A stretch of 64,000 nt of DNA, from NCBI GenBank assembly GCA_002269645.1, contig NIVC01000114.1, positions 434,001 through 498,000 on the forward strand, given 5' to 3'. The notes beneath the pieces were generated by a model. The model did not search any database. It was given only the letters and a program-made list of their open reading frames with translations, and was not told the DNA's origin. This document shows positions 19,964 to 46,120 of this stretch, in pieces; the first letter of the stretch is position 1, and each line of letters opens with the position of its first letter. The DNA is from Macrostomum lignano (taxonomy: Eukaryota). Position numbers and translations under genes: made by a program.

Positions 19964-20250
19964 GGGGTTGTAGGTTGTAGCCTATAGTGGTCAGAGCGTC
20001 GGAATCACGACTTGAAGGTCGGGGGTTCGTTTCTCGGTCAACTCAAACACTTGTGTCCTTGAGAGCAAGACACTTAACTCTGCATTGCTTCAGTTCACCC
20101 AGCTGTAAAATGGGAGCCAGCATTAACTGGGATAATTGAGGTTGTGTGGCGACCCCACAGTCCTTGGACTGAACAGCCGTACGCAGCCTTCAGATGCGCC
20201 ACACAATAGCTGCGGCTGAGCTGTCGGTTGCACATCTGGCTCAATTGGGG
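19964..20250 (+). mobile_element. tRNA-derived SINE, CORE-like family, copy b
   Basis: A/B boxes followed by GTGTCCTTGAGAGCAAGACACTTAACTC...GCTTCAGTTCACCCAGCTGTAAAATGGG, which resembles the MIR/CORE domain. Confidence 0.8.
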
Positions 20251-23141: not shown

Positions 23142-26100
23142 ATGAACCTGCTCCCGGAGCTGAAGAGCGCCGCCATGGACGGCAGAGTCGGCAAGGTGCG
23201 GCAGTTTCTACGGAGCAGCGTCAGTCCGGACGTCGCTGACGACCGGCAGCGGACGGCGCTGCACTGGGCAGCCGAGCGAGGCCAGTCCAGGGTGGCGAGG
23301 CTTCTCATCGAGGCCGGAGCTCAGCTGGACGCTCAGGACAGCAGCGGGGCGACCGCTCTGCACCTGGCCTCGATGCACGGTCACCGGGATGCGGTCCGGC
23401 TGCTGCTCGAGTCCGAGGCCGACACCAGCCTGGTGACGAAGTCCAGCTCCTCGGCGCTGCACCTCGCCTCGCGGAACGGCCACCTCGAAGTCGTGCAGCT
23501 GCTGAGCCGGCAGGCCGACTGCGACCAGCAGCTCGCAGACGGAGACTCGCCGGTGCACCTGGCTGCTCAGCTCAGGCAGCAGCTCGTGCTCGCTGCTCTG
23601 CTGCTGGCAGGCGCGGATCCGAGCGCCAGGAATGCGCGCGGCCAGACCCCGCTGCACTCCGCGGCTCTCCACGGCCAGCGGGTCGCCATTGAGCTGCTCG
23701 TCCGGGCGGGAGTCGCCGCCGACTCGCTGGCCAGCGACGGGTCGACGCCGCTGCACGCTGCGGCAGCGATGGGGCACGAGGCCGCCGCCCAGACTCTGCT
23801 GCAGCTCGGCTGCGGGCTCGGCGATCTCAACAGGTGCGGGCTTAGCGCCGCTGCCATCGCCTGTCATTTCGGGCATTGCGAGGTCTTGCAGCTGCTTCTC
23901 AAGCATGCGACTCACGCCAGGGAGCTCGGAATCCGGCACGAGAAGACCAACGAGAGGCTGCAGCGATTCAAGAATTCGCTTGTTCCTGCAGCTCAGTCTC
24001 GCAGCACGTCTTTGCCCGAAGAGCGGTAAGCGTTTGCGTGATGTCAGTGATGAGTCGGTCTATACAGAAGAGTGCACTCGTTTCTCTTTACGCACAATAA
24101 AGATACTCTGTAGCCGATTTAAATCTCGAATATTCGAAATATGCCCTTGCTGGTAATAAGACTGGTAGAGGTCTTCGAGATGTAACCCTGGGAGCCCAAC
24201 TGCTCTTTACTTGTGGTTATAGGAAATCCTGCAAAGCCTTAACTAATCCATCTTCTGATATTTCCGAAACCTAAACTACTAACAGCAGCGTAAAAGAAAA
24301 TTGACGTTACCTTTTAAACTATACTATACATTTATAACACAAGATTTGTCCGGTAAAACGCATGGTTGATGCTATTTCTTACAACAGAGCAACGAAAGTT
24401 TAGAATAAAACCGCAGATACTTTTCAACACCGTCTCCAGCTCTCTCATTAGAACCTCTTGCAAGCATTAAACAGTCTTCACAAGCCTGCAATCGGTGTCA
24501 AATAAGGCTGGATTACCACTCGGTCCTGACCAGATGCTTTTTGTTCCTCACCGGCACATGCGGTCGTGCTCTGCCCTGGTGTTGGGACCCACCGAGCAGA
24601 CAAGCTTATTACTCGTTGCAGATCATGAACAACATGTAGGATATCCTCAATGGCGGTTTGGAATATTCATTCACAAGTTTTCTGCAAGCATTCTCTCTCT
24701 TTCATCATGAGACGTCCGTCCTCCTCAATCAGCACAGACGGTCTAAGACGTGGCAGACTTTGGTTACAAACTCTATCTTGGTAGATGACCTGCAATGTAG
24801 CTTTTTCTGCCTTAAAGAAGACAACAACAGCTTCTATCAGTTTCACCAACATTTCCAGTCTCAAGGATATGAAAGGTAATGCATGGTTAACTGCCGATTA
24901 TGAGCTCATATGCCGCTCTATTAGTGTATGAATTGCTTCTTCTAAAACAGTTATTTACAGTTGAATCTCAGTCCAAAATTTCGACGATCAATCCTCATAG
25001 ATACCCTATTAGACGCTAACAAGGAACCAAATTGTTATACAAATTCAATTAACGTTCTCTGATCAACAGCTTTTGTTATAGAAAGCAGTGGGTTCTGTTT
25101 CATGCAAAATATATACGCGTAGTTTTAAAATGTGCAACAGAAAAACTCACATAGACAGGGCGTAACTCTGATACATTTTGATTTTTTTCTGACTGAGCCA
25201 GCTCGTAACTGTGAAAAATGATCCATGATGCTTTCATTCTGAATGCCAAATGGTTAAATCATCATAGTACGCTTATTCCTAACCTTAATAATACTTCCGA
25301 GATAAATTGTATTCAATGTAATGAATGCGAATGTAAAATGCAAAAAATGTTATGTTTGAAATGTGAAATTTGAAATGTGGTTAAATCATGCATGCATTGT
25401 TGCAAAGATTGGATTGCCCTCGCATTCATTCAATTCAAGTCCTCTCAGCTGGCAGGTTTCCAGTATTCTCCCACGTCAGTCGTTTTGCGTGAATCCCCTC
25501 GTGTAAGAGCGCACGAGCAATACGAGTGCACCCTGTCAACCATTGATATCACTGCAAATACTATTGTTAGTCTCTGGGTCTATTAATCATATAGTCTAAA
25601 AATTGTGTTGCTTTTATTAGTAATAATTAATTGCTAAAATGGTACAACTAAATGAGCCACTGTAACTCACCAAAACGTACAGTGAGCAGCCCGACTCAAA
25701 CAGCCTGCGCGAGGTCCTTATTGATATGGAGGCTGTGGAAGATGAACAAGAAAGTTTGGCAGAGAGCCACAAAAGTGCTCAGCTGCACAGAGCCCTGAAG
25801 GAGTCCGGGTTTGAACTGAATCGTGTGAAACTGCAATCCGCATGTTCTGATGTCCTGCAGCGCATCACTAGAAACCGCCTCGACGCTCAGGAGTACAATG
25901 ACTACGAAGTGTACATCGTCGGGAGCTACAGTGAAGGCTGGTCCAACAGTCTGGTTCGGTTGGATGGCCAAACGGACGCAGACTCCGACATCGACGTCTG
26001 CTTCGTTGCGAAAGGGATGCTTTTTCATCTCAAAGGCTGCTGCAGCTGCATCAACTGCAGCTTCGATGAAGAACAACATAGGGTAGTTGAATATGAAGAC

Positions 26101-29100
26101 GGGCACATTAAGTGGCCTGGATCGCGTAAGAGGATATTGGCTGAAATCTGTGATTTTCATTTTCACTTGTGTACCCTCATTTAGTAGTAGGAGTTAGCAG
26201 AACACGGCCGCAGGAAATTCCGTGGAAATTCCGTCACTGGTTTACGTACTGGAGAGATGGCTCCTAGAGCCCTGATCGCCTAAAACTTACAAGCCTTCGC
26301 TGAGTAGCAGGTATGGGGGAAGGATGAGCATTGCAACTACATGTATAGGATTTCATGTAAGCATAAAGCAGCGGTAGGAGCAGAAAACGAGAAGCGCGTA
26401 TGAATAAAATAAATGGTGGTGCTGCGCGTATAGTGTGCATGTATATGGCTGTGTCTGACTTTTGAGATGGTATAGAGATGCAACTGTTTTTTAATCATTT
26501 ATGCATAGTAGAAGATACTGAAATTATAATAGGCTCGTATGCTTTTAAAAATTTGCCAATTCGCAGGTTTTTGTTTGCTTACTCTTTCGGCCTGTCGCAG
26601 TGAAAGCCACTGAAATTGGGTGGAGCCGCTGCTGTTTTATGTTTGTAATATGCTTGCTTGAATTGAAATCAGCCCAGCACTGTGCCTGCAGTGTGAAGTG
26701 CTGTGCATCTGGAGTGGGGGAGGCTAATGTATACTGGCCAACCCTTTCCTAGCATTCACCCACCCTCCGGCACCCACCCCACTCCGCCATGAGGATATAA
26801 AAGGGCCGGCTTTGAAAAGCATTTTTAAGATCATACTTCACTTTTTAATCTCTGAAGACTTCACGTGAATCATGGACATCGGCGAAGGCTACAAGGTACA
26901 GGTGCAGGAATTTGAAGGGCAAAAATTCATCGCCATAAGGAAGTTTTTTCGGCATGGCAGCAGCGCCAGCCTCAAGCCTGGAGTTCCCGGCTTCAATCTG
27001 AATACGCATCAGTGGGCGAAACTGAAGGAGGTAAAGCGCTCGCTCGTGAAGGCTGCCCTAAGCGGTGAAACCAAGGTTGTGAAATTGGGCTTTGACAAGT
27101 TTATTGAGGTTAGACAAGGAACAATTTGGTTGAAGCGACTGCCCGAGGACTGTTGCGAGGAGTTTCTGAGACGCAACACAGTGCCTCTGTCTCCGCTCTT
27201 GTGGCAAAAACTGTGGCACGCTTCCGGTTGGATTGACAAGCAGCTGGCAGAGCTCTCTCAAAGCATGCGAATGAACTATGAGCTGAGCTCATCTGACGAC
27301 GATGAAGAGGTCACCGTGAAGCTTCCTGTCAAGACTGAGCCGAATGAGGGTGAAGAAGAGGCCCGCTCACCAACAGACCTGACGATCGTTACTGAGCCGG
27401 TGACTTCAACGCCTCTGCCCCGAGCTGGCGCTGGGAACATCCCGTCAGAGGACACAAACTTGCAAGAAGATCCGGTATGGTATCAATTCCGGGCTCATGC
27501 GGCTGCGGTGAACAACAGCAGAAAGCGCAAGTAACCGTGGGCTCTGCGCAGGCAGGATGCGGTCAAGAGGCCGAGGTGGATACCCCGTGACGAGCTGCCG
27601 AACTCGGACGAAGATGATGAGTGAACTTGTTTTTAAATGACAGCGATAGTTCGCATTTTGTATTTCTTTGATTACCATGCGCATATAAAAATTATAATAA
27701 TCGAGAAAAAATTGTGGTAAAAAAAATCAAAATTTATTCAGAAGTTCGCGTGACTTCATTTTCAACAATTTGACTAACAACTTGATTTCATTTAAACTTT
27801 ACTCAGTTTCCTTTTGTTTTGTTTGTAACTGTTCTGAATCGAATCACTGAAGTAAATGCTCACTGTGTTGTGCTCCGCTGAATGCTTGCTTTAGCTTATA
27901 ATATGTTACTGCATGTAAAATACACTGTTGTTCTATCAAACTTTATTCGTCGCAGGTCCTTAAGCATTTAAGAAAGAAAGCTGTCTCAGTTGATTTTTTT
28001 AGCAAATGGAAAAGATATTCTTTAATCCCGAGCAGCCTGCCAGTTTTTCTGGTTGCAACAAACTTCTGAATGAGGCTCGAAAACAAGGTATCAAAGTGGG
28101 AGAAAAATCTGTTAAGAATTGGCTTAACGAACAGGCAGTTTACACTTTACATAAGCCATCAAGAAGAAACTATCCCCGAGCACCAATTGTAGTTCGAGCT
28201 ATGGATGATCAGTGGGAACTGGATCTGGTAGAAATGATTCCGTTCGCAAAGTACAATCACGGATACAAGTATATCCTCACATGCATCGATGTGCTGTCAA
28301 AGTTTGCTTGGGCCAAGCCACTAAAGAATAAATCAGCAGGAGAAGTGCGGTCTGCTTTCGAGGCAATTTTGAAGAGCACGAAGCGCAGGCCGCGAACAGT
28401 TCGTTCAGATCAGGGGAAAGAATTTGTCAACTCAAGCTTTCGACAGAGCTGCATAGAGAATGGCATTTTAGCGTTTAAAACAAACAGCGAGCAGAAAGCA
28501 GCGATTGTAGAAAGATGGAACCGAACTTTGAAGAATAAAATGTGGCGATACTTCACTCACAACAGCACTCTGCACTGGGTAGATGTGCTGCCAAAGTTAG
28601 TGAAGTCGTACAATGCTACTTTTCACAGAAGCATCAGAATGGCGCCAAGAAATGTTTGCAAGCAAAATGAGTCGGAAGTGTGGATGAACCTGTATGATGG
28701 CAAGGCAATAGAAACTTTGGATAAAGTCAGGAAACCAAAGTTCAGTGAAAATCAAACTGTAAGAATTTCTAACGCGCCCCGGCTATTCAAAAAAGGGTAC
28801 AAAGCAAACTGGAGTGAGGAAGTGTACACTGTAGTTGCAAAAGCTCCGAAACATTATCCTTACATGTACAAGATACGAGACATGAAGGGAGAAGAGATTC
28901 AAGGCCTCTTTCACGAGCACGAGCTGCAGGCAGTGCCGGACTCACAGCGACTATACGTGATTGAGAAAGTGTTGAAGACACAAAAGCAAAGAGGGAAAAT
29001 TCGCTATCTTGTCAAGTGGGCCGGCTACGGTTCGACAGGCTGGGTGGATGAAAAAGACTTAAGAAAGGTTTAGCTTTGACACATCCCTCATCATGTAGTT

Positions 29101-32100
29101 TATGATTATAATGCGAACTATTTTGATTAACAGTGAGCATGCTGAAGGTACTCCTAGTGACTTTAATTTTTACCTGTCTTCACCTATTTACTTGGATCGA
29201 AATGTGGACTATGAGGCAGGTCTGGCTGAAATCCATCTGCCTGCTGCATGATTCAATGTTGACGAGCCTTACTGCTTCACTGTCTCAGATGGAAGAGAGC
29301 ATGAGGCCCTGGTTCTTCAACCCGGACGCTTTGCTAGAGTGGAGGAGCTGGTGGAGCGCCTGAATGAGCTGCTGGCCAACTCTGATTCGCTGTTCTTTGA
29401 TGCAATGAGTGACAGGGAGTCTGAGATGGAGGCTGATGAGTCCGGCCTGATGGGGCGTAGTGGCAACAGGGAATTCGGTATGAAGTTCGAAATCCGCAAC
29501 TCACGAACTGTGGTGCACAACAACACTGCGAGAGCAGAGCTGTTTCTTCCATCCAGCAAAATTCTGCATTGGCTGGGATTTGGAAACCAGGCTGTGAAAA
29601 TCCAGCCAGGGAGCCGCGTATCCGAGCATTGCATTGGCTGCCCGCGCACCAGCTTAATCAATGTACACTGCAGTATCGTTGAGTCAACCAACAGGGGCTC
29701 CCTGTTGAGAACAGTCGGAGTGAACGCCAACATTGAATGGGGCAACTACCTGTCAAAAATATTTAAGAAAACAATATTCTTCCCGATTCAACGAATCAGT
29801 CTTCTTCACAGCATTCGAGTTCAGCTGCGGGACTTCTATGGTTGCCCACTGATTGCACAGACTCACAGCCCTGTTCTGCTCACAGTTCAGATTCGGGAGA
29901 AACGCATTCAATGAACTACCAGCAGCTGATCCAGCAATATTCGGGGGTGAGGACAGCACACGAAAAGCCTGCACTCTATGGCTGTGGGAGCTTCCCAGGG
30001 ATCATGACATACCAGCCTCCGCCAGCGGCTACATCATCATCTTCAACGCGTGGCAACGTCAGGCGCAAAAGAAATACTGTAGCAAGTCCGAAACGATTGA
30101 AGAAGAAGAAGGGCACCCGAAAGGCAACTGGTGGAAATCGCAATAAGATGTCAAGCAAGGCTAGTGGGAAAAAGCTTAAGAATAGGAAGACGAAAGCAAA
30201 GAAGAATGCAGCAAGCGGAGGAAAGCGAAAGCGAAAAGTCAGCAAGAAAACTGTGAAACGCGTGCTCGACTCTCTGTCATAGACATGGCTTACGGATTCA
30301 ATCCCAGACTTGATTTATTTAAGACGCCTGTTCTACAAACCTGCATTGAAAAAGCTACTTATGTTGATATTCACCCAGTTAATTCCATTGTTGCAAACTC
30401 CCCCATTGAATTTGACTGCCACCAATCTGCCGATGAATACACAGATCTGCTTAATTCTTTTCTTTATATTCGCTGCCGCCTTGTGAGACTGGATGGGGGT
30501 ATGCTGAGGGAGGATGTTCGAGATGGAGATGGCATCATCACCGAGCGCAGAGACAGTGATGTGCACCCAGAAAATTTTGTTCTGTCTACAGTCTTCTCAG
30601 ATGTAATTGTGAGCATTAACCAGCGAGTGGTGTCTGGTGGAGACCAGCTCTATCCCTACCATGCGTACTTCAAAGCACTAATGAGCTCATCCGATGCCCA
30701 GCAACTAAAACTTTACCCTGCTGGCTTCCTGGAGCCGGACTCGGCACCTGAAGAGCACACGGAGAGTCACAGGGAATCCCAATGGATGGAGTATGCGGGG
30801 CCGCTCTTCAGCGATGTTTCCAGTGCCCAGTGTTTCTGCTAAACAATCTGCACTTGCACATTAAACTGGTGCCCAGCGATGGGGCCTTTGCCATCAGAAG
30901 CCCGAATGCAAACAACGCGGCATACCGAATGGAAATCTCTCACAGCATTCTGCATCTTCGCCGAGTCAAAGTGGTGCCCCACATCAGCCTGGCCCATGAG
31001 CAGGGGCTGACAAACCAAAATGCACTGTATCCCATCGAGCGAACTGAAATGCAGAACTTCATCCTACCCCAGGGTATTCAGTCAAAAAACATTGAAGGAT
31101 TCACTCATGGAAAATTGCCGAAGTTCATCATGCTGGCCTTCGTGAGCCACCGTGCATTCAACGGTCATCATCACGCGAGCCCGTTCCAGTTCCAGAGCTT
31201 CAACCTCAGCCGGTTGGCTCTAAAGAAAGGTGGGGAAACCGTGTGCCACGGCGCCTTCACACCTGAAAACAATTCCTTCGTAAGAGAATACTTGCACTAC
31301 CTGAAAAGCTGTCAATCTGCAAGCCCCACAAATTCGGTCCCGTGGATCCCCTACCAGCTCTTCTCCAACAACACCACGGTGTTTGCATTCGATCTCACAC
31401 CCGAGGGAGCGGCTCTGTGGTACGGACAGAAGGAGGGCAACCTGCGGCTGGAGATTCGCTTCCGACAGGCTCTGGACGAAGCGGTGTCCCTGATTGCTAT
31501 GTGCCTGTATGACTCGCTGATTGAGGTCACCAAGCACCGGGAGCTTTTGCTGGACTATTCCTCTTAACTGGCATGGACGCAATTAAACTATTCAATCTAG
31601 CCAAAAAAATTTTGCCTTGCCAAAAATTTTCTATAATTACTTTACATTTGCGCTATAAAAATTCTCTGTCCTTGAATGTAAAAAGAAAATTTCGATCATC
31701 AATTTCCCTTGAAAACAAGTTTGTTTTTGTTCTACTTCAGCTCAATGGCTCATTTGGTCACTGGGTGGTATGCTATGCTGGGCAAGGAAATTGCATTGAG
31801 CTGTTCAACTCCCTCGGCTGGGAACCTGAAATTTTATCTGTGGTTTATAATTTGTTTCGAGAGATTAAAACAACTGGCTTTTGGCTCCGAAGCAATCTAA
31901 ACAGATTTCAATGTGCTAACTCTAATAAATGCGGAATGTTTTGCATCTATTTTGCTTATCAAAAGTTTCTGTTCAATCGGTCATTTGAGGGGATTCTGAA
32001 GCATTTGCATGCTAATGAAAAAAATCATTTGAATGATAGAATCTTACAGAGGTTTGAAGCCAACTTAAGAAAAAGATGTTCTAGAACTATATTTATGCAT

Positions 32101-35100: not shown

Positions 35101-38100
35101 TGCTAAATATTGCTCAAAAGAAAGGAAAATAAAAAAGGTCCTTTGCCTGACACCAATTGGAAAAATGTGCGTTAAAATAGCTATATCAGATTCAGCACAA
35201 ATGTTGCCAACGAAGTGAGCGATGATGAAATTACCGGTATGAGCAAAATGACAGGTTTGTAACGAAACACGACTTAAAAACATGAGAATGTAATTACATG
35301 GGCTATGACAACATAGCAATTACACTTCAGCATGTTGAACGTATTACAAAAGCTATCAGATAGTTTAAAAGAGCAATAAAGCAAATAACTACGAGTACAT
35401 TTTAAGTCATGCGATATTTTAAGTAAATCAAAGCCTATGCGTTAGTTTAAAAATAAATTTGAATATGCTCATAAACAATAATATAAGATTGGAAAATGTC
35501 GAGAAATTTAATGTCGATAAACGAAAGTATGAAAAAAAATGAATTAGACTGGCTTGATTATGGATAGCAATAAATGATGCAATCGTCGTAAGTCGTTCAA
35601 ATAAATGTCAATGATGCATCCCTCACGTTTAGTCACTGTTGAAGATCTGGAGGCCGCTTCCTCTTCCGGGATGGTGCATCAGATTGGCCAAGACGGAAGT
35701 GGCCGAACGGGAGGCTGTCATTTGCGCTGATCCAGGCCCGTTTGTCTTCCCAGATGGTGAGGGCTCGCTTCCTCTGTCGAATTGTGAACACTTCATGTCG
35801 ATGGCTTGCAATTCGGTGTGTAACAACATCAAGCGTCTTCAATGATTCAAATGCAGCAACATAGTCCGCGTGATTAATTTGCTGCTTCAGTACGGCTCTC
35901 TGAATTCCTTTTGCGGCCTTCTTGTGAGCGGAAGCGGCGGAGCTTTGAAAACTTTACAGTTTTGGTCGGAGGAGAATCCACTCTTTGTACTCAATTCCGC
36001 AGGATTCATCCTTGACACAACCGAGTTTGGCTTTCAACTCTGTAGACTTAAGCGGGTGGCCGTCAACATAGTTTGATGTGTCAAGAATCCGCCTTTTGAT
36101 TAACTCTGGCAGGAACTCTTGCACAGGGTCAATATTCCTGATGCAAAGGAAAAAAGAATCTGTGTCACCTCCACAGAGCTGTAGCCGATCTTTCTCGTCT
36201 TCAAACCACGGTTTAAGTTTGTTGTACCACAGCGAATACATAAACAACTTAGATAAATCAAGGACGCACTGACCTATGTAAATTGGTCTGTCCAGGCACA
36301 CGGTTGTTTTGCTCAGCTCAAATATGCTCAAGTCCTGGTTGATGATAATGACTTCTTTTAAATTGGGCTTTGAAGCCAAAACCCTGGCCTTTACCTCGGA
36401 ATTGCAGATTCTGATCAATCTCCGTTTCCTGACGTTTTCCATCGTCTTTCCAAATACCGAATTAATCTTGAGCTTGTAGTAGAACTTCTCAAACTCTGAC
36501 TTTGATGCAATCCTTCGCTCAGTATTCTTGCGAATGTAAGGATCCAGGATAGCAGCCTGCGAGAACTGTATTGCTCGCTTAAATTTAGCGACTAGCATTC
36601 CCTGCTCAATGTAGAATTTCAGAGTTCTGCTGTGAACGACGTAGCTCTGCTTGTCAAAGCAAGTTAGCAACAGTTTTTTACAACTATTATAGTTATGGCC
36701 ATCTGGATTCAAACGTTGCCATAGATCTTGCATGAACTCTGGAAAGTCTGCAAACTCCAGTTGGGATTTCTCCGGTGCCAGTGGCAAGTCACTCGTTTTG
36801 TCATGAATTTCGGGTGGGCAAATCAGGTCAACCTCGACCAGAAATGCTGTTGGCGCAACGTCTGGGTGATTCAAAATAGTGGCATCAGTCCAAGTCATCA
36901 GTTCTTCAGGCTCAACCCACTTGAATTCTTTGTAGGGCAGCTGCATTGATAGCGCAACACCGTAAAGATTATTGACATCAAGAGGAATGAGTGATGCTGA
37001 CTCTTTTGCTGACTTCTCCATCGCCACCTGATGTACATTAACAAAACACATACCACCACGAATACCTTCTTCAAACATCCTATACATTGTGTTGTCAGTT
37101 AGTAGCTCCAGCTTGACTCCAGTACTTTTCAAAGCCGAAGAGAAGGATAGTCCAGGAGTGGATATGAAGTGGACTGGATCTAATCCATCATCTAGAATAC
37201 TAAGACGCCTGAACGACTCAAAGACATCAGCAAGCTGCCTAACATCAAGCTGGAGGTAAGCAAGCATGTAGTCTTTGAAATTCGCTGCACCAAATTCATC
37301 CCATGCCCTCCTCGCTCGTTCATACTGCTCGGTGGTGCATTCACTCTTTGAGAGGGTGCTGAAAAATTCCTGACGAGGTGGTAGCTCGTTTAGCTCCAAG
37401 TCAGCTGTGCTTTGTACAAACTCATAGGGAAAGACACCTTTGGCTTCAAGAGTGACATCAGTGAGAGCGGGATAGAACTCCTTTAGGGATTCGGTGTGGA
37501 TTCGTTCATCCATCGGTAAATCTCTAATAAGAGAGTCTAAACTGCTGCTTAGAAATTGGAAAGAGTCCAAAAATTGGATCGTGGCATAGAGTGGCACAGT
37601 TTTTCCTTGAATAACGACTTCATTAACTTGCACTTCGGCGGTTAGAGACAGGTATTTCTCTGTCGTAATTGGTACAACACTTAGACGCCAGTGCTTCATT
37701 TTTCCCAGTGCTACAGAAAAGAGAAAATGCATGTCGTAGTTCTTTAGGTTATGGAACAGAACAGGTAAATAGCGTCGCTTTAGCTGAGCAGCAATGTTAC
37801 ACTTGGAGCATGCAGCACCTCGAAATTCACCAGACAGGTGATCATGATCCCAAACCTTTAAAATGGTGTCCTCATTGAACTTCTCATGACAGTAATAGCA
37901 CGTATCGGCTGCTTCAAACAGGCTTTGAGCGTTTGGATCAATAATCTTCGGCTGATAACTGTGGCTCCTGTTCCACTCATAAATTTCGCGCGCAAGCTGT
38001 TCAAGAGAAAGAAGAAGTTGCTCAATGCAGTTCTCTGTCGAAGAGGCTGTAAAGGCTTCATACATTGATTTGGAGTCTCTGAGTGCAGGTCCTTTAACAC

Positions 38101-41100
38101 CTGCTCTTTGGACAATCAGATACCCAGCAGCTGCTGGTGTATGATGAGAAATTTTTTGTAGCCCTGCTGGAATTTCAGTGTTCATGGGAACATTGAAGGA
38201 CTCCAAATCTGCATAAACTACAAATGGTGGAGAAACTGTTTTCTCATAGCTCGTAAAGGACATTATGCTCTTTTCTTTGGTGGGCATAATCTCTTTCACC
38301 GTACAGCTGTTTGATTGGTAACAATCTTCACGATGAGCACTAAGACGCTCAGTAGATTTGAAACCTGTCAAGCATCTCTCGCACCATTTTCTCTGGTGCA
38401 GTCCATCATGACTATTGAGCAGACGGTTGAGATTTACAAACCCACACCAATGTCCTTTTTCAGAGTTGTTGGCTTTTGAAAAAAGTAGCAGTGGAACTAC
38501 GATTCTTCCTTCGGCGACTTCTACCTTTGGCTGTCTTAAAACTTCCACTGTTCCATTCTTCCACGTCAGCACAGTGAAGCACACGTTAGAATTTCTTTTC
38601 TCAACTTGTTCAAGGCTGCTAAGTTGAATTGGCTTCGGAATTCCTTCCAAATCGAGTCCAGGAAGCCAAGCCTGATAGGATGAGAGTCGGTGAGGAGCCT
38701 TGCGAATTCTGTCATCATCGTGGTGCAAGACGGCAATGCAAGCGTACAGGAAGCAATCATCACCTGTACTAGGCGGATTTATAACGGCTTGCTTAGCTTT
38801 AAGATCTCTTGGTAGCTCAAACTTGTCAGCATGACCAATATAGTAGCGAATCCGGTCACCGTATGACACAAAAACGTCAACAAAGTTGACACCACCAAGC
38901 ACCCAGCCGCTACCGTTTGTATTTAACAATTCAATGACTCTTTCGCAACCATTCACTTGAGTAGTCCACCAGGCTTCAAAGTCATCAGCTGAATCCAACT
39001 GCCCCATGGGCACGCTAATCCACTTATCCTCTTCAGCCACCATCTCACCTCCTCTCATTCGCTGCATATGTACATTCAATCTCAATTGAGCACGCACCAA
39101 TTTACTCCTGTCAAGCAGTCTCTCCGATAGAATACGCTCTACGTTTGACCTCATAGCTGCTACGCTGGTGAATGCATCTGGAGTAGCCTGATGATCACCC
39201 TGGCCGTGGCCAGGTTCTGCTTGCTGGCGTTGCTGTTGTCGAATTCGAATGGATTCGAGGACTCCATTGTGTGCACTGATGATTCTGTTTGTGAAGTTCC
39301 CACCTGCATTTTTAAAAAGGTTGTTGCAAACTCAAATTATTCTAAGAGTTCACTTTTTCGTGCATTTTGAACTGTAATACTCAGACTTATACTCATTTAA
39401 TGATATGAATTATTTTATTTTTTTCAGATTTAGATTATTTCCTTATAATTTATCATGAAGCAGCTCATATTGGCTAAGCTATAGGAAGCTTTAAATTCTT
39501 TTCATCGAGAGACTTTTGCAAAGAATCCGATTTTTCGCTCGTTATTGGTTAAGATCATGATAATTAAGCTCAGAAACACAACTAACTTTAGGAGAAAACT
39601 TGCTCATACCTTCATTTTCAACGTTGTCTTTATTCTCCATGTGACCTGCGATGCTGGTGGTGATGCTGGTGCTGGTGTTTGTGGCAGTGCTGCTAGCATC
39701 AGTTGGCTCAGACAAGTCTTCCTTGGGCTCAGACCAGTCTACTTCTTCTTCATCTGACTCAGACCAGTCTTCTTCATCTGACTCAGACCAGTCTTCTTCA
39801 TCTGACTCAGACCAGTCTTCTTCATCTGACTCAGACCAGTCTTCTTCATCAGACTCAGACCAGCCTTCGTCATCCGTCTCAGACCAGTCTTCTTCTTCTT
39901 CACAAAACTCAGACCAGCTCTCATTGGTCATAGGCCAATCTTCGCCAGACTTAGCGTAGTCCACCAAAACTGGAGCGCCTTGAATGGACTGAAAGTGTTT
40001 TCAAATCAAAACAAAACCCATATTTCATTTAAATATGCAAATTTAATGATTAAGTTTACTTATTCGCGCTAAGAGCTTGTAATTAATAGCGTTATACAGT
40101 TGTCTAACAGACATGCCACTTTTAATTATTATTTAAAAAAATCCACTGATTTTTTTAATTTGCGAATCAAATCACACAGAATCTATTTATCTATGAGCGT
40201 ACTTATCTAGATCCATTTTTTATAAAGAAGTAAAGCAAAAACTTTGAAAACTCACTTTCACTGTAGCTAATTTACTAGCAAGTTTATTTTGATTCAGTAG
40301 GGCATGCAATGTTTATTACCTGACAATTAACAGCAGCGAGCTCCATTTGAAACTGCAGCATGCATGCATAAGTTTAAAGAACACTGACCAAGAGTTCGAA
40401 ACATTAGATAAGTTTATTAAGCAATTATATTAGGTGAAAAGTACATCATAAAAATCATTTAATCAACCTATATCCCCTATAGCAACACACCCTAGCATTT
40501 GAAGTAGTCCTGAAAACCATTACAAGCAAAACAGAAGCTGATATGGGTTTCGTTTGAATATTAATATTTGGATAGTGCACACACACAAGTATTTCTTTTT
40601 CTACTCCAATATCCTCATGAATGCTTTACCAACCCACGGTTCTAATATATTGTAACCAACGTCCACACTCCACACCAACCCAAATAAAAACGAATTTGTA
40701 TGAGTACAGAGAAAATAAAATAGGAAATTACAACGGGGTAAGAGTGATTTTATTGCCGTCAACTTGCACAACATACCCAGCTCCACTCACGTGCGGCAAT
40801 AGCAGATTTAAAGTAAAATAGTTAGCACCAGCATTTTCATTAATATCAGCAACATTTGCCGGCGTCATCGTCGTCGTTGGCAGGTCGATGGATGCTAGCA
40901 GCTCATTGAGCTCATCATGACCATTTGCAACAGTAACAGCTGCATCAGTGACTGTGGCTGGAATTTTGGTTGAAGCAGCAGAGTCGGCGCCAACCGGGAT
41001 ACCAGCAGCAGCAGCTGAGTCGGCGTCAACCGGGACACCAGCAGCAGCAGCTGAGTCGGCGCCAACCGGGACACCAGCAGCAGCAGCAGAGTCGGCGCCA

Positions 41101-44100
41101 ACCGGGACACCAGCAGCAGCAGCTGAGTCGGCGCCAACCGGGACACCAGCAGCAGCAGCAGAGTCGGCGCCAACCGGGACACCAGCAGCAGCAGCTGAGT
41201 CGGCGCCAACCGGGACACCAGCAGCAGCAGCTGAGTCGGCGCCAACCGGGACACCAGCAGCAGCAGCTGAGTCGGCGCCAACCGGGACACCAGCAGCAGC
41301 AGCAGAGTCGGCGCCAACCGGGACACCAGCAGCAGCAGCTGAGTCGGCGCCAACCGGGACACCAGCAGCAGCAGCAGAGTCGGCGCCAACCGGGACACCA
41401 GCAGCAGCAGCTGAGTCGGCGCCAACCGGGACACCAGCAGCAGCAGCTGAGTCGGCACCAACCGGGACACCAGCAGCAGCAGAAGCAAAGCCGTCAAGTT
41501 CGATGTCTTCCTCCATCTCGTCGCCTTCTTCTTCAATCATCGAACTATCGATTTGAACCATTTGCTTGCCTCTTATGGATGGAGCACGTCTAATAGGTAC
41601 AATGGCTTGCACTGCGTCAGCTGTCTCAGTTTCCATTCCATTGTTTGGCTGAGGAAGTATCGAGGGTTCTCTAGTATTTACGTCTACGAACTCATCGCTG
41701 GAACTTAGGCTGTCGTTTCGAGCTTGAATTACACCATTAATTACTTGACTGAGCACGCTCGATCGCTGCTTGGCTGCTGCCACTTCCGCCGTTTGATGCT
41801 CCATGTGTCGCCTCGCCGCTCCCATTACCATTCGTCGAAAAGATCGCGCTGTGTCTTTAGTCCCAGGCAGCAATTGGTGACCCCGATGAGCCTTAGATTG
41901 CTTAGCGCTCTTCTTCGCTTCATATAGAGAAACCTTTGAGCACTGCCAGCAGACACTCCACTTCGTCACGTTCGTGCAGTTTTTATGTCGATCCGGTCGG
42001 AGTCCACCTTGTTTGCATTTTTTACAAGTCATGCACACCTCGTATTGCCAATCGGACGACATTCTAATTTGAAATCATTCACTAATAATCGCTACTTGAT
42101 CTTCAGCTGCTGCTCCTCTCTATTTATATTCTTTTCAAATTTACTATCAGCAGTAACGGGCCAGCAGATCTTATATAGGATCCACTTCAATGCATAGCGT
42201 TATACGTTTATAATGGCCTTTTATTCTCAAGTAAATACAAGCAGCCAGTGTAGACTCCATATACCCTCGGCCTCAAGTTTAAATTATCTTATAAAAACGA
42301 AAGGGCCCATTTCATCCTTTTTCAAAACGTTATGCCGACGCATGCATAATACAAACCGTTGCTTTATGACGAAAACAACTTGGAATATAATCTTTAACAG
42401 TAATGGTTCAAAACTTTATTGCCCCTATCGAGCCAGCCAGACAACCCCGATATCACTTCGCTGCAATGCGTTATCTGGAGGGGGCGAAAATTCAAGGCTA
42501 CCTTAAATCAGTTTACAACTTAATTGATCTCTGAAGAAGGCGCAGCCATACTTTGCAAAAAAGAAGCTCCAGGCCGAAAGAGTAAGCAAACAAAAACCTG
42601 CGAATTGGCAAATTTTTAAAAGCATACGAGCCTATTATAATTTCAGTATCTTCTACTATGCATAAATGATTAAAAAACAGTTGCATCTCTATACCATCTC
42701 AAAAGTCAGACACAGCCATTTACATGCACAGTATACGCACAGCACCCACTATTTATTTTATTCATACGCGCTTCTCGTTTTCTGCTCCTACCGCTGCTTT
42801 ATGCTTACATGAAATCCTATACATGTAGTTGCAATGCTCATCCTTCCCCCATACCTGCTGCTCAGCGAAGGCTTGTAAGTTTTAGGCGATCAGGGCTCTA
42901 GGAGCCATCTCTCCAGTGCGTAAACCAGTGACGGAATTTCCACGGAATTTCCTGCGGCCGTGTTCTGCTAACTCCTACTACTTCATTTGCATCATTTTAC
43001 CAAAAGCATCATTTTCCTAAAAGCTCACCCACTGAAAATTTCGCCCCAAACAGCCTCGAATCCGTCGCAGACCTGGGCCGGGTCGGAGGTCAGACCGGCA
43101 GTCGATCTTGTGTGGGCGTTCCGCTGCTGTTGCTATCCAAAACTGGAAGTGCTGCGGCCAGGGTACAGAACTCACATTGCGCCATCAGTGCTGCAGAGCC
43201 TGAGGCAGGAGATGCTGGAGTCTCCATGTCACCTGGTGGCAGCGGCTCCCCCCGGCAAGGACGGACAGCAGCTGAGGATCAGCACCACCTTCCTGGAACG
43301 AAGGCTGCTCAGAAGCCTCACAACTGAGCAGGGACACGTGTTCGTGCTCATCAAGTTCATCATTAAGAAAGTGATTGCAGCTCGAGCCAATGGACTCAAG
43401 ACCTACATAGCCAAGAGTCTGATGTTTTACCTGCTGGATGAGACGCCTGCTGGCTACTGGCAGTCCGAAAACCTCATCAGTCTGGCGAAACGAGCACTTT
43501 CGATTCTGTTGCGGTGTCTGCTGGACAAGGATATTTCAGATGCGGACAAGTGCATGAAGCACTTCTTCATGAGAGATGCCTGGGTGTACTTAAAGAGGCG
43601 CCACAGTGGAAAGAAGCTCATTTCAGATGTTGTGATTGACATCATCGAAAAGCTGTCTGAAGTTGTGTCGTGTTTTTACGAAACGCTGCGACCACTGGAG
43701 GATGCGAAAAACTTCAGCTTTCATCCGTTCCTGGTGCTGCCAGTTTTGATTCCGAGGCCAGTTCCGATGGCATCAAACCTGCAGTTCCACGATGTGTATG
43801 ACGCGATCCGGTCCATTCTGCTGAACTTGGCTCATGAAGAGTGCCGCGAAGAAGACAAAAAGGTCATGATGAAGCTGGCTCGTAGAGTTCCCAACTACGC
43901 TGCATGTCCGAAGTACTGCCTCTTCGCGCTGATCTACTTGAAATTCGAAATGCGCTACGCGGCGCGAAGGGTCTTGCGCTCGTTCCGCTATCACCAGGTC
44001 AGCCGAGGACTGTCACGCTGGAAGGTGCGCGCCACTGACGCAGAGTCTGAGTTGGCGGTGTGGCAGCACCTGGAAAGAGCCAGTTCGGTTTGGAAGCTCC

Positions 44101-44384
44101 TGATTCAAGCCGACAAGCCGCCCGTTCTGTCATTTCTGCCAGCCAAATTCAGGCAGCATTTTTCACTGAGCTGTGGCCAGTTTGACTGGTACTACGTGAA
44201 CTTTGACGCGCTGCTGAAAGCCCTCAGCCTCTATCTGGATCACGATGTGGAACTTGAGCTGTGGTTTGAAGAAACTCTCCGCTGTGCGAGTCCAGACGTT
44301 CAGGAGCTGCTTGTAACTCTTGAGCTTTGTGGGGATAGCGACCTGCTTGTCCAACTGGTTCAGACACAGGCGAGCCATTTGTGA
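23142..44384 (+). CDS. Ankyrin-repeat cGAS-like (Mab-21/cGLR) nucleotidyltransferase, copy 3; exons 23142-24025, 25683 (or 25704)-26125, 43054-44384; Polinton in intron 2
   Basis: The ankyrin ORF (TALHWAA, TALHLAS, SPVHLAA, TPLHSAA, TPLHAAA) ends CG|GTAAGC (phase 2). The NTase exon has GSYSEGW...DSDIDV and ends C|GTAAGA (phase 1). The C-lobe exon starts AAACAG|CC with RPAVDLV, LRISTTFLE, LKTYIAKSLMF and KHFF. Phases match copies 1 and 2. The ankyrin join is inferred; the NTase N/C-lobe join is stronger. Confidence 0.78.
26183..26594 (+). repeat. Polinton left TIR
   Basis: Reverse complement of 42570-42982 with only a few mismatches. Confidence 0.97.
26796..26803 (+). promoter_or_regulatory. 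Candidate TATA box for the PC4-like gene
   Basis: TATAAAAG about 70 nt upstream of the ATG at 26872. Confidence 0.55.
26872..27534 (+). CDS. Polinton PC4/Sub1-like ssDNA-binding protein, probably two tandem PC4-like units plus an acidic tail
   Basis: VQVQEFEGQKFIAIRKFF...PGVPGFNLNTHQWAKL fits the PC4 consensus. A weaker second unit ends PLSPLLWQKL...IDKQL, and the protein ends in the basic stretch RKRK. Confidence 0.75.
   Translation: MDIGEGYKVQVQEFEGQKFIAIRKFFRHGSSASLKPGVPGFNLNTHQWAKLKEVKRSLVKAALSGETKVVKLGFDKFIEVRQGTIWLKRLPEDCCEEFLRRNTVPLSPLLWQKLWHASGWIDKQLAELSQSMRMNYELSSSDDDEEVTVKLPVKTEPNEGEEEARSPTDLTIVTEPVTSTPLPRAGAGNIPSEDTNLQEDPVWYQFRAHAAAVNNSRKRK
28006..29073 (+). CDS. Polinton retroviral-like (rve) integrase with C-terminal chromodomain
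   Basis: DDE residues in WELDL, RSDQGKEF and VERWNRTLK; chromodomain YVIEKVL...YLVKWAGY. Confidence 0.95.
   Translation: MEKIFFNPEQPASFSGCNKLLNEARKQGIKVGEKSVKNWLNEQAVYTLHKPSRRNYPRAPIVVRAMDDQWELDLVEMIPFAKYNHGYKYILTCIDVLSKFAWAKPLKNKSAGEVRSAFEAILKSTKRRPRTVRSDQGKEFVNSSFRQSCIENGILAFKTNSEQKAAIVERWNRTLKNKMWRYFTHNSTLHWVDVLPKLVKSYNATFHRSIRMAPRNVCKQNESEVWMNLYDGKAIETLDKVRKPKFSENQTVRISNAPRLFKKGYKANWSEEVYTVVAKAPKHYPYMYKIRDMKGEEIQGLFHEHELQAVPDSQRLYVIEKVLKTQKQRGKIRYLVKWAGYGSTGWVDEKDLRKV
29111..29914 (+). pseudogene. Polinton minor capsid (penton) with in-frame TGA at 29249-29251
   Basis: MRTILINS...FYLSSPIYLD...YEAGLAEIHLPAA*FNV continues in frame into ORF 29339-29914 (INVHCSIVES, FFPI, IRVQLRD). It sits after the integrase, as is usual for the penton. 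Confidence 0.75.
29911..30282 (+). CDS. Polinton Lys/Arg-rich putative core (DNA-condensing) protein
   Basis: Starts MNYQQLIQQY, contains LYGCG and a very basic C-terminal half, and lies between penton and MCP. Confidence 0.6.
   Translation: MNYQQLIQQYSGVRTAHEKPALYGCGSFPGIMTYQPPPAATSSSSTRGNVRRKRNTVASPKRLKKKKGTRKATGGNRNKMSSKASGKKLKNRKTKAKKNAASGGKRKRKVSKKTVKRVLDSLS
30285..31567 (+). CDS. Polinton major capsid protein (double jelly-roll), frameshifted at ~30817-30819
   Basis: N-terminus LDLFKTPVLQTCIE...PIEF...YTDL; C-terminus FAFDLTP...GNLRLEIRF. Adding one T to GATGTTTCC joins the two ORFs as SDVFQCPVFLLNN. Confidence 0.88.
31573..32103 (+). CDS. Polinton adenain-like cysteine protease
   Basis: GHWV, ELFNSLG and FQ...SNKCGMFC motifs. 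Confidence 0.88.
   Translation: MDAIKLFNLAKKILPCQKFSIITLHLRYKNSLSLNVKRKFRSSISLENKFVFVLLQLNGSFGHWVVCYAGQGNCIELFNSLGWEPEILSVVYNLFREIKTTGFWLRSNLNRFQCANSNKCGMFCIYFAYQKFLFNRSFEGILKHLHANEKNHLNDRILQRFEANLRKRCSRTIFMH
32106..32753 (+). CDS. Polinton A32/FtsK-like packaging ATPase
   Basis: Walker A GPTNAGKT, Walker B LVVFDD, plus LTQNIF and KNPRD. Confidence 0.93.
   Translation: MEEKRVCYDLRLRQGSCMIVCGPTNAGKTTFVKHLIQYRDVMFDVKPGRVLWYYGISQAGHAELSSLGVQLRQGFPTNIEAALRPNDLVVFDDLIEETSNSASMRNFFTGIAHHLPCFLVMLTQNIFFKGKESRTMSLNVMYLAILKNPRDQLQIAALGRQCFTEKPGFLLSVFKHVTAQNRGAYLFLDFHPSTPDELRVRARILPNQRPHLVFA
32796..33134 (+). CDS. Polinton small basic hypothetical protein
   Basis: 112-aa ORF in the co-oriented cassette; LVEACHNLLQNN resembles the post-ATPase protein of Polintons as I recall it. 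Confidence 0.65.
   Translation: MEVLDSHASIFAVLASPKYTVRFKRLLIKNCPKEVRYFLVEACHNLLQNNLSFSLDEKAVLAKSKEIIRKITHQRRKTDLLKAGFIKILPILLKLVKKKKQNEQIFRNGSDS
33100..33792 (+). CDS. Polinton hypothetical protein
   Basis: 230-aa ORF with MVLIP...IPSSNILDLI...PVGW...F...L...NVP and a C-terminal KGYG. Confidence 0.7.
   Translation: MNKFSEMVLIPKAEYEMLMQNLKPNETTTEADLKQAQKKCDDILYAEDCPEDVKTTMYQSAMQSLLAKRKHAGKEGVRNAEAKLMKTETPQMNTWEEKISKSVPQKFKTRARSLWMILSTNPELIRVCENGEVEITGTSIPSSNILDLIQHAVRDSSCEGEPVGWNEFIDLLQQKKLNVPLSAIGKSVKKKMVTSRGGELEKEQASLVKGYGSNTAWLKLPARKLHKKVD
33822..34658 (+). CDS. Polinton protein with a DEDD/DnaQ-exonuclease-like N-terminus; the C-terminal part overlapping the TBP-like gene is doubtful
   Basis: YIDFQGF...FVVKELAVV resembles an ExoI-type start; the last ~110 codons overlap another frame and look non-conserved. 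Confidence 0.5.
   Translation: MNYIDFQGFPCNSTSKNFVVKELAVVQIRAGSYRIAHHVYAPPYPWERVSPDMRVYYRQLSKSVHQFKWSDGTRPYMELAEDILSIASGPIWTNGERKSIFLTELLGRQVYNLEDLGAPSTEDSDTGCAVRNSLLHYSWLKPKFCINLRSEQCPWHTSRRFAEEVKDRNEPTSCSPKSDQSGWRSGSEAGWWQGRPAASTGTGSQHGSCDLPARLAPGAHQADAESQSDSATLPYWATEHLRCQDPRRRQKGCPSLRGYAASESAGSTAASSNYLCSN
34327..34899 (+). CDS. Polinton-encoded TATA-binding-protein-like protein
   Basis: Two TBP repeats: TNLVG...IYRPVWPRVLIKRMRSPRVTLLLYPTGQLSICGAK...AARRF and EYEPESFSALIFKL...LLFHRGSFVLSGAR. AATAAA follows the stop. Confidence 0.88.
   Translation: MSPPAAALRVTNLVGGVDLRLDGGRGAQLPLRELALSMAHVIYRPVWPRVLIKRMRSPRVTLLLYPTGQLSICGAKTHADAKRAARRFVAMLHRRVPAQLLPHQTICVRIKTITAHGQLLLSSALSLPKLSMNLPKAEYEPESFSALIFKLKFCKCLLFHRGSFVLSGARSFFQLQTDLMRLKRVICNSA
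35633..39988 (-). CDS. Polinton protein-primed DNA polymerase B; main exon 39303-35633 with premature TAA at 35956-35954; candidate upstream exon 39988-39610
   Basis: Motifs YADLES, FHNLKNYD, FLDSFQF, DVNNLYG, KLKINSVFGK and GGDTDS. After LRPKL* the same frame continues SF...AAKG...EDKR...PFGH. The upstream exon joins in frame (G|GTATGA donor, GCAG|GT acceptor). Confidence 0.9.
39727..39915. repeat. 24-nt repeat encoding WSESDEED
   Basis: TCTTCTTCATCTGACTCAGACCAG units; seven WSE motifs on the minus strand. Confidence 0.9.
40728..42062 (-). CDS. Polinton accessory protein with a Cys/His-rich N-terminus and 14 x 12-aa Ala-rich repeats
   Basis: 444-aa ORF; CMTCKKC...H..C...CWQC...H..H; SAAAAGVPVGAD repeats. 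Confidence 0.65.
   Translation of the reverse strand: MSSDWQYEVCMTCKKCKQGGLRPDRHKNCTNVTKWSVCWQCSKVSLYEAKKSAKQSKAHRGHQLLPGTKDTARSFRRMVMGAARRHMEHQTAEVAAAKQRSSVLSQVINGVIQARNDSLSSSDEFVDVNTREPSILPQPNNGMETETADAVQAIVPIRRAPSIRGKQMVQIDSSMIEEEGDEMEEDIELDGFASAAAGVPVGADSAAAAGVPVGADSAAAAGVPVGADSAAAAGVPVGADSAAAAGVPVGADSAAAAGVPVGADSAAAAGVPVGADSAAAAGVPVGADSAAAAGVPVGADSAAAAGVPVGADSAAAAGVPVGADSAAAAGVPVGADSAAAAGVPVDADSAAAAGIPVGADSAASTKIPATVTDAAVTVANGHDELNELLASIDLPTTTMTPANVADINENAGANYFTLNLLLPHVSGAGYVVQVDGNKITLTPL
40975..41480. repeat. 36-nt coding tandem repeat, 14 copies
   Basis: Unit GCAGCAGCAGCTGAGTCGGCGCCAACCGGGACACCA. Confidence 0.95.
42570..42982 (-). repeat. Polinton right TIR
   Basis: Reverse complement of 26183-26594; ends CTACTACT followed by TCATTT. 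Confidence 0.97.
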
Positions 44385-46120
44385 CCACCAGGGCACGAGA
44401 GAGAAGGTCGAGCAGCTGATGCAGGGGTCGGTGAGTCAGACTGGTCATTGCAAAACCAAAGTGAGAGACCGCAGCGATCATTGCATTAAATGATTGCCGA
44501 TTCTCTTGCAGCAGTCACTGGCTGAAAGGAGCTTCCGAAGGACAGTGCGAGCGTTGCCTGGTCCAGAAAGCACCGATGAGGACCAGCTGGGAAGAGCCCG
44601 ACCCGTATGGTTCAACCTCGTCGCGCTGTTCAGCTGCCTTTGCTGCCTGTCGCCCCAGGTCTTCTTAGCGCAGAAGTCCCGGCGCTACGGATTTGCCATT
44701 GGCAAGGAGTGCCTGGTGGCAGCCGTTCGCAAGCATCGCGCTCGCGGCGTCAGAGGAAGCGTTCTGGGCCGCTACTCGTCTGCTGTAAACATTGTGTATG
44801 GCAACTGCGTTTTGCTTATCTTTTTGCTTTCCTGTTTCGTTAACTTCCTAAGTCTCAAATCTACCTGGCTCGGCTGGCTGTCAGGTTTAAATGTTTGTAT
44901 TTTTTTCACTGCATTGTTAATAATTTTCATTTTTACATGCGGAATTTCGAGTATAATGTACCGGGCTTCGTTAAATATGGTAAACCACACAGTCTCGAGC
45001 GCTGAAGTGACTCATGCATAGACAGGGACCGTTCTATAAAGCTTTGTAAATTCCGTTGTCGTTAAGCTCTTACGAACTTGAGTTAAGAACTGACGTCCTT
45101 CTTGAGTTCTTGAATGCGTTTGATTTAACTTTCCCAGATAAGTCTTATTAACCTAATCGAAGCAATTATTTTGGCACTTTTTACTACAAAACGATCTCAT
45201 TTTGATTTACATGTATTTCTGCTTGTAGCGCTAAGCACATAGGTATTTTTATCAGTTTTCTCGCATCATTGTCACCTGATATTTTGTCGAGTTGTTGAAA
45301 TTTTAAATCATATCGGGAGGGGTGTCCATTCATCGAGTCTATAAAGCCCAGAAATTTAATTTTGCGATTCTTTAAAAAAGGGAATCTACAGGATTTTTTT
45401 GTCCAAAGATGACCATTTTTGTGGATCCGCCTTGGAGCGGCTTGTATTTTGTTGGGGGTTGACTGTTTGTTAAATAAATATCGCACGCATGTTTCTAATT
45501 TCTAATTCTAATTCTAATATGCAATAATTCCGATGAAAGTGCAAGATTTTTCCAGATAACTTGCAATGAAACAGTTAATTCATGCACAGATATTCAAGAG
45601 ACCCAAGTATATGGAATTATCATAGTCATTACGCCATAGGTTAAAGTCACTAATATGGGTCACTGATTTTCTTTACCACGAACAACCTGCTAGTTTTACA
45701 CTTCAAGTATCATCCAGTCTCCTACACGTGTTGTTTCCAAAGTTTGAACATTGGATTCAACGACACCATTTGCACTTGACAACAGGTTTCAGCAGACTTT
45801 TTACTGTCTTCATCACTCCGATACTCCGACGATGCTCTTTTGCCAACTGCTGCTATTCTGCTTATGTCGCTGAGCCTGATGATGCAGTCTGACACCCTTG
45901 GATACAGGCTTGAATACTTAAGAGGTGCATGCCTTTTCGCGTTCCAAGTTTCATTTAGCATTTCTGAACAGAGGAAAAGTAAGACTTGGAAAGATAGTAA
46001 AGACAGTATGTGTTTTCTCAGCAACATTAACTTGAAACTTGTTTTTATTTACCAAATGCAGCTAGGTTAAATGACACTGGATTGGTAGGCTCAGATCTCA
46101 CTGCGGTATCAACCAGACGG

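Follow-up and report, generated by a model that had tools for sequence, protein, structure and literature searches.

A decayed Polinton/Maverick element in the second intron of a predicted cGAS-like receptor gene of Macrostomum lignano: probably a chance insertion into a redundant copy

In a 64,000-nucleotide stretch of the genome of the flatworm Macrostomum lignano (contig NIVC01000114.1, positions 434,001 to 498,000 of the forward strand), referred to here as the window and numbered from its first letter, we analyzed a Polinton/Maverick element of 16,800 bp that lies in the second intron of a predicted cGAS-like receptor (cGLR) gene. The element extends from position 26183 to 42982, with boundaries set by its inverted repeats and the target-site duplication. 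The reading that we favor, with a probability of about 65%, is that the element landed by chance in a cGLR paralogue that gene duplication had made redundant, and that it, and probably the gene copy too, has since decayed neutrally. In this scenario, the rve-type integrase of an ordinary endogenous Polinton/Maverick would have placed the element in the second intron, then 122 nt long, of one member of a multi-copy gene family combining ankyrin repeats, a cGLR core and a membrane tail, and would have left the 6-bp duplication typical of such events. The insertion would postdate the duplication behind the closest paralogues. Subsequently, the element would have gained stops and frameshifts at about the neutral rate, and the filled gene copy a frameshift that cost it the C-terminal tail. 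The event would have been neutral or mildly harmful and tolerated because the copy was redundant, with no designed link between element and sensor.

The window contains one pair of long inverted repeats. Its arms are 98-99% complementary and differ by 6 substitutions in an alignment of ~412-419 nt. The outer termini read 5'-AGTAGTAGG...CCTACTACT-3', i.e. 5'-AG...CT-3'. Polintons, also called Mavericks, are self-synthesizing DNA transposons, and the animal lineage has also been described as adintovirus-like elements. Characteristically, they are 15-20 kb long and have inverted ends of several hundred base pairs, a 6-bp duplication and 5'-AG...CT-3' termini, and their genes comprise a protein-primed family-B polymerase, an rve integrase and an ordered block with protease, ATPase and capsid genes. 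The window element shares the size, the inverted ends, the termini, the 6-bp duplication, the protein-primed polymerase and the rve integrase. Its block is in the usual order, with a protease-like gene, a P-loop ATPase gene and two genes in capsid position. The termini, the duplication and the gene set thus assign it to Polinton/Maverick. It differs from this type by additional TBP-like and PC4-like genes and two repeat-bearing open reading frames (ORFs), by capsid genes that no search recognized, by five broken genes, and by a polymerase whose closest relative is only 56% identical.

The position of the element within the host gene was read directly. Intron 2 has the donor CGC/GTAAGA at 26126 and the acceptor AACAG/CC ending at 43053 (slashes mark exon boundaries), and when 25726-26125 is joined to 43054-44384, the frame stays open over a phase-1 intron. 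The host share of this intron consists of 26126-26182 and 42983-43053, or 122 nt when the duplication is counted once. An earlier interpretation made from the letters of the window, hereafter the sequence-only reading, had described a 16.8-kb element with a TCATTT duplication between these two splice sites, which had enlarged an intron of ~120 nt to ~16.9 kb while preserving splice sites and frame. All of this was borne out: the element measures 16,800 bp, both copies of the duplication were read, and the phase-1 intron has grown from 122 to 16,928 nt. The insertion also parts the DxD half of the catalytic core from the third Asp, as had been proposed. The GS loop and the D-I-D motif are encoded in exon 2, and the third Asp follows 18 residues past the junction.

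The empty site is preserved in a paralogue. The paralogous locus L006 (assembly Mlig_3_7) aligns to window positions 25546-26182 and 42983-45147 with 89-95% identity. These alignments share exactly 6 bp, a single TCATTT in a 122-nt intron, which is the exact empty site. The insertion is therefore real, and both halves belong to one gene. The opposite case, two halves from different genes, had been named beforehand as the finding that would speak against the sequence-only reading. At the protein level, the M. lignano gene models P0001, P0069 and P0070, which are 94-98% identical, likewise continue over the junction (...HIKWPGS/PSNPSQTW...). P0001 was the best match in a word-indexed protein search (97% identity), and its 90% cluster comprises four near-identical proteins, including P0069 (BOX15_Mlig031018g1, 1,073 amino acids) and P0070. 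The latter comes from another M. lignano assembly and is 98.3% identical to the window gene, with an identical exon 1. We considered L006 as an allele of the window locus and rejected this, because its flanks are not alignable with the window; it is a paralogue. A distant paralogue (P0007, locus L005, 39% identical) has an intron of ~77 nt at the same position, which indicates that the intron is old and was originally short. The remainder of the window, L005 and L006 contained no further copy or fragment of the element. Exact look-ups with P0001, the window integrase, the ATPase, the exon-1 ORF and the exon-3 ORF gave no match, so that neither another copy of the element nor a transcript nor an allele of the locus, be it filled or empty, was recovered.

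The comparison of divergences suggests an order of events. Between the window gene and L006, synonymous divergence (dS) is 0.064, nonsynonymous divergence (dN) 0.029 and dN/dS 0.45, whereas the two ends of the element differ by 0.015 (6 of ~412 positions). The insertion thus appears to be younger than the gene duplication, in agreement with the empty paralogue.

The condition of the element was assessed against its relative L001, a 14.4-kb contig from a public sequencing run. Its gene content and gene order are the same, every gene is open, and it served as the intact reference for counting breaks. In the window element, five genes are affected by 3-4 in-frame stops and 2 frameshifts (5-6 breaks in total), while five others are open, namely those for the integrase, the protease, the ATPase and two conserved proteins without assigned function. 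Five different relatives align straight through the stop in the polymerase gene. A neutral calculation based on 9.5 kb of open coding sequence, a 4.7% share of random substitutions that create a stop, and half of the divergence between the ends predicts ~3.3 stops, compared to the 3-4 seen, and the stop count would thus fit neutral decay. Open frames in all core genes, the mark of an intact, autonomous copy, are not what the window element shows. Judged from its sequence, it is full-length and not intact. The description of the element as a complete Polinton hence held for its ends and its gene set and failed for its reading frames.

The filled gene copy is damaged as well. We modeled the host gene on P0069 and L006 as four exons spanning 23142-45021. 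They encode about eight ankyrin repeats, a nucleotidyltransferase of the Mab21/cGAS fold with the GS loop, DxD and third Asp, and a hydrophobic tail, an architecture that is unusual among cGLRs. Exon 1 is 100% identical to that of P0070 and 93.5% identical to that of P0069. Near position 44362, 2 nt are missing compared to L006 (AG within CAGAGAC), which causes a frameshift and a stop at 44382-44384. Downstream, the conserved continuation (RHRRAICDHQGTREKVEQLMQ...) and exon 4 are recognizable in another frame. As sequenced, the copy encodes 885 residues instead of ~1,071, and the ~186 lost residues include the hydrophobic tail; exons 1-3 contain no further stop or frameshift. The gene end that had been placed at 44384 must therefore be corrected: this stop is due to the 2-nt deletion, exon 3 runs on to 44430, and a fourth exon follows (Table 1). 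The host copy would be either a pseudogene or a truncated variant.

The family to which this copy belongs is large. The word-indexed search with the host gene returned 18 clusters, all from M. lignano, and an exhaustive profile search yielded 79 representatives with a threshold of E<=1e-30 and 627 with E<=0.001. Three members, including the host gene, lie inside the window. The other two, on the minus strand, are tandem duplicates with 87-95% nucleotide identity, and their coding matches lie ~700-800 nt apart at the position homologous to the filled intron. In a family so large and so recently duplicated, the filled copy would be redundant. More than half of the M. lignano genome consists of repeats, and 180 Mb lie in near-identical duplicated blocks. 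Given the family size, the three members in the window and this repeat-rich, duplicated genome, a chance hit is unsurprising.

The identity of the host gene as a predicted cGLR is supported by fold, motifs and relatives. Pfam Mab-21_C scores 21.8 bits on the window copy, under the cut-off of 24.1, and 27.3 and 25.6 bits on the two neighboring paralogues, which both pass. A first structural model, of full-length P0001, led to a fold search swamped by ankyrin matches; an ankyrin-free paralogue, P0006 (41% identical), was therefore modeled instead. The AlphaFold2 model of P0006 (predicted local distance difference test score 83.6, predicted template modeling (TM) score 0.86) gave human cGAS as the top Foldseek match (E 1.3e-6, TM 0.55), followed by MB21D2, MAB21L1 and MiD51, the fold evidence thus stemming from a paralogue and not from the window gene's own product. 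In sequence searches against solved structures, the host protein and the family profile gave nothing significant, the best relevant match being MB21D2 at E=0.18; the profile matched no Mab-21 or cGAS protein, and one profile was swamped by ankyrin matches. Among ten distant profile matches that we sampled, eight pass the cut-offs for Mab-21 and Mab-21_C; of the others, one has a nucleotidyltransferase domain just under the cut-off and one Mab-21_C only. Two of the ten also have TPR matches.

The catalytic motifs in the product of exons 2 and 3 are G66-S67, D88-I-D90 and D151, with spacings of 20 and 60 residues. Li et al. (2023) defined cGLRs by a G[S/G] loop and an [E/D]h[E/D] X50-90 [E/D] triad (PMC9980059), and the spacings in the window gene agree with this definition. 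The residue preceding GS is V and not Q/T, and together with the hydrophobic C-terminal tail and the Mab-21_C score under the cut-off this sets the window gene apart from the described cGLRs. Across five aligned family members, the Ser of the GS loop, both Asp residues of DxD and the third Asp are invariant, and the Gly is replaced by Ser in P0017. Two close paralogues, the M. lignano models P0002 and P0003, appear to read in frame through the homologous short intron (...GESRKQIYNIF...), which looks like intron retention or an annotation error; because of these two models, the third Asp is not invariant in larger alignments. Five M. lignano paralogues of the host family, including P0012, are in the list of cGLRs cloned for a screen, and an ankyrin-fused architecture has been reported for some cGLRs (PMC9980059). 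The active enzymes named in the text of that paper come from insects, anemones, molluscs, hydras and corals only, with no flatworm among them, and the portion seen of the table of cGLR and STING counts does not list M. lignano. Hence, the label of a cGAS-like sensor gene was upheld in its first part by fold, motifs, Mab-21 relatives and the published list, while a sensor function, like an antiviral one, is suggested by membership in the family.

Several observations weigh against our preferred reading, and those on the host gene speak for its closest competitor, namely that the insertion is harmless: the 16.9-kb intron would be spliced out, the frameshift would be an error or tolerated, and the full-length ankyrin-cGLR protein would still be made. 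We consider this a real possibility, to which we give about one chance in four. Intron 2 retains an undamaged donor and acceptor, the same as in L006, which was annotated on the basis of a genome-guided transcriptome, so that the long intron could still be removed. P0070 spans the junction and, to judge by its near-identity, may be the same gene as the window copy, annotated as spliced. Apart from the 2-nt deletion, exons 1-3 are free of stops and frameshifts, and exon 4 is open. The deletion itself falls in an AG dinucleotide repeat and could be an assembly error, as could the two frameshifts of the element; its stops, being substitutions, are less likely to be errors. In addition, a dN/dS of 0.45 indicates that selection acted through much of the divergence between the host gene and L006, and a single insertion (n=1) is uninformative on target preference. 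What keeps the harmless alternative behind is that an intron of 16.9 kb is more than ten times the species mean, that the frameshift is present in the sequence as it stands, and that any of the AATAAA hexamers on the plus strand of the element could end the host transcript early. There are 16 of these, two of them 220 nt inside the left end and nine clustered at 34.9-35.6 kb. We infer that the insertion was neutral, as our preferred reading assumes.

A functional connection would be the more striking explanation. Here, the element would profit from the silencing or truncation of an antiviral sensor by the insertion, or the sensor would come under the transcription signals of the element, and the insertion would have been kept for this reason. 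This explanation draws on the way in which the insertion splits the catalytic core, with DxD on one side and the third Asp on the other, on the co-orientation of nine conserved element genes with the host gene, on the TBP-like and PC4-like transcription proteins that the element encodes itself, and on AATAAA hexamers on the sense strand. Nevertheless, the sequence lends it no support, and we regard it as very unlikely. The element decays as expected under neutrality, its polymerase and capsid-position genes included, so that little is left to benefit, and the filled gene copy carries a frameshift of its own. Loss of one among dozens of paralogues would leave sensing in place. The hexamers are as frequent on the antisense strand (15, with each strand at about twice the compositional expectation), and none lies within 200 nt past the end of any plus-strand gene of the element. 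An early end of the host transcript at one of them is possible, and their distribution points to no design. The statement that the element brings AATAAA signals was thus correct for their presence on the sense strand and misleading in what it implied, given the lack of strand bias and of placement after genes. Moreover, this is a single event that was chosen by a reader seeking striking coincidences, the active enzymes that Li et al. name in their text (PMC9980059) include no M. lignano cGLR, and the antiviral role is itself presumed from the family. Even a shade less probable is the specific version in which a Polinton with TBP-like and PC4-like proteins landed in a cGLR core and the filled allele was kept for altering sensing, through termination on the sense strand or through element-driven transcription that couples sensor output to element activity. 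The sequence-only reading had itself allowed for chance in an immune cluster tolerant of transposable elements, and it is this option that best fits the decaying element, the frameshifted copy, the large redundant family and the unbiased hexamers.

Finally, an assembly artefact, i.e. a chimeric join of a Polinton contig and a cGLR gene, has almost no weight: although the M. lignano genome is repeat-rich, highly duplicated and known as hard to assemble, both junctions are exact to the base, the inverted ends being full and the 6-bp duplication perfect, the host flanks meet at a single TCATTT in an independent paralogue, and a misjoin would not yield a target-site duplication.

The features of the host gene, its neighbors and the element are compiled in Table 1. 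The nine conserved genes and the TBP-like ORF lie on the plus strand, which agrees with the earlier statement that most Polinton genes are co-oriented with the host gene; the polymerase gene and two more ORFs are on the minus strand. The integrase is 79% identical to its L001 counterpart across its full length. The functions of the two capsid-position genes are proposed by analogy, for the 269-aa gene from its position as a putative minor capsid gene and for the 427-aa gene from its position and size as a putative major one. Neither had a match in Pfam, in the PDB sequence search or among named homologues. Spread across two frames, the 427-aa gene has 77% identity to its L001 counterpart, which is a single ORF, and each of its 12 relatives is a single protein of 421-470 aa. 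An intron was considered as the reason for this split and rejected, since all 427 residues of the relative align over the two frames and none is missing. The protease ORF shows His and Cys motifs in its translation, and the ATPase, 77% identical to that of L001, has a weak Pox_A32 match (15.7 bits, under the cut-off of 22.8). The overlap of the TBP-like ORF with the 278-aa ORF recurs in L001 (TBP-like ORF at 5639-6223, minus strand; ~85% amino-acid identity), and the two-frame layout at 33822-34899 is therefore no break. For the polymerase, 50 relatives were found, many of ~1,200-1,400 aa, the best of which, on L001, is the one with 56% identity. The Cys-rich ORF has a weak FAM76 match under the cut-off. 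This Polinton lineage thus carries two homologues of general transcription factors, TBP-like and PC4-like, both conserved in L001. Our literature search found no report of TBP-encoding Polintons, nor of Polintons in M. lignano.

Table 1. Positions of host-gene, paralogue and element features in the window.
Feature	Position	Strand	Evidence or remark
Exon 1, about eight ankyrin repeats; ends in phase 2 at donor CG/GTAAGC	23142-24025	+	Pfam Ank_2 154 bits
Intron 1, 1,657 nt	24026-25682	+	mostly unalignable with intron 1 of the paralogue
Exon 2, first half of the Mab21/cGAS-type nucleotidyltransferase core, GS loop and D-I-D	25683-26125	+	acceptor TACAG/T read
Intron 2 as it stands, 16,928 nt	26126-43053	+	splice sites read
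Exon 3, third catalytic Asp, Mab-21 C-terminal helical domain, further helical region	43054-44430	+	paralogue comparison
Exon 4, hydrophobic membrane-anchor-like tail, 2-3 segments	44512-45021	+	open; out of frame with exon 3 in this copy
Ankyrin-cGLR paralogue	~460-4519	-	passes Pfam Mab-21_C cut-off; 31-nt tandem repeats upstream, 4498-4794
Ankyrin-cGLR paralogue	~12354-16117	-	passes Pfam Mab-21_C cut-off; 31-nt tandem repeats upstream, 16325-16596
Target-site duplication TCATTT (6 bp), left copy	26177-26182	.	sequence read, empty-site comparison
Left terminal inverted repeat	26183-26594	.	inverted-repeat search, arm alignment
PC4-like (transcriptional coactivator p15) gene, broken by 1-2 in-frame stops	26806-27576	+	Pfam PC4 31.8 bits; compared with intact 282-aa L001 gene
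Integrase, rve core and weak chromodomain match, open, 355 aa	28006-29073	+	Pfam rve 51.9 bits, cut-off 32.6
Conserved 269-aa gene, minor-capsid position, broken by 1 in-frame stop	29111-29914	+	L001 comparison
Conserved 427-aa gene, major-capsid position, broken by 1 frameshift	30285-31567	+	L001 comparison
Adenovirus-type cysteine protease (weak match), open	31573-32103	+	Pfam Peptidase_C5 18.3 bits, under 21.3 cut-off
P-loop ATPase, packaging-ATPase position, open	32106-32753	+	Walker A GPTNAGKT, Walker B LVVFDD
Small conserved gene (138 aa in L001), probably 1 frameshift, less secure	32692-33134	+	L001 comparison
Conserved gene, 221 aa in L001, open	33100-33792	+	L001 comparison
Conserved 278-aa ORF	33822-34658	+	L001 comparison
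TBP-like ORF, other frame, overlapping 3' half of 278-aa ORF	34303-34899	+	Pfam TBP 83 bits
Protein-primed family-B DNA polymerase with N-terminal Endonuclease VII-like module, broken by 1 in-frame stop	35654-39286	-	Pfam DNA_pol_B_2 80.5 bits (cut-off 25.8), Endonuclease_7 32.9 bits
Acidic ORF with 24-nt repeat (DWSESDEE units)	39542-39967	-	translation, repeat search; no L001 counterpart called
Cys-rich ORF, 14 copies of a 36-nt repeat	40728-42062	-	translation, repeat search; no L001 counterpart called
Right terminal inverted repeat	42570-42982	.	inverted-repeat search, arm alignment
Target-site duplication TCATTT (6 bp), right copy	42983-42988	.	sequence read, empty-site comparison

Outside the host gene and the element, the window contains further repeats and host genes. 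A retroelement remnant at 8271-11152 (minus strand), with an RVT_1 reverse-transcriptase ORF and a SAP-domain ORF, lies between the two minus-strand paralogues. A ~270-bp repeat, probably a dispersed short element, occurs at 17513-17753, 19973-20240 and 51345-51612, as well as at 6404-6675 of L006. Satellite-like arrays are located at 57682-58762 (23 nt x47), 62378-62986 (30 nt x20), 54097-54511 (28 nt x15), 55384-55761 (21 nt x18) and 59606-60007 (74 nt x5.5), and coincide with a pronounced GC skew over the final 8 kb of the window. Downstream ORFs on the minus strand at 47081-48028, 51720-52697 and 61115-62146 encode RRM, NRDE-2 (nuclear RNAi factor) and FAM91 domains, respectively; these are ordinary host genes unrelated to the insertion. 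tRNA and Rfam searches of the window gave no matches.

The arrangement resembles intronic transposons in multi-copy immune clusters, in that a large element is tolerated in an intron of a fast-duplicating, lineage-specific family and other repeats are nearby, namely the reverse-transcriptase element between the paralogues and the diverged intron 1. It differs in that a virus-like element here meets a host gene of antiviral type, which is eye-catching and comes with no evidence of interaction. If there were a true interaction, the locus would be one of the rare physical traces left by the conflict of a DNA virus lineage with the class of sensors by which such viruses are detected, and an allele kept for altering sensing would be the fossil of a direct conflict between virus and sensor. 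As it stands, the locus is a textbook flatworm Polinton insertion with a preserved empty site, useful as an annotated example and giving no evidence for a new mechanism. Of greatest interest among the side results is that this Polinton lineage encodes both a TBP-like and a PC4-like protein, and the lineage may merit a study of its own. Overall, the insertion shows that the large, recently duplicated ankyrin-cGLR family of M. lignano tolerates such insertions.

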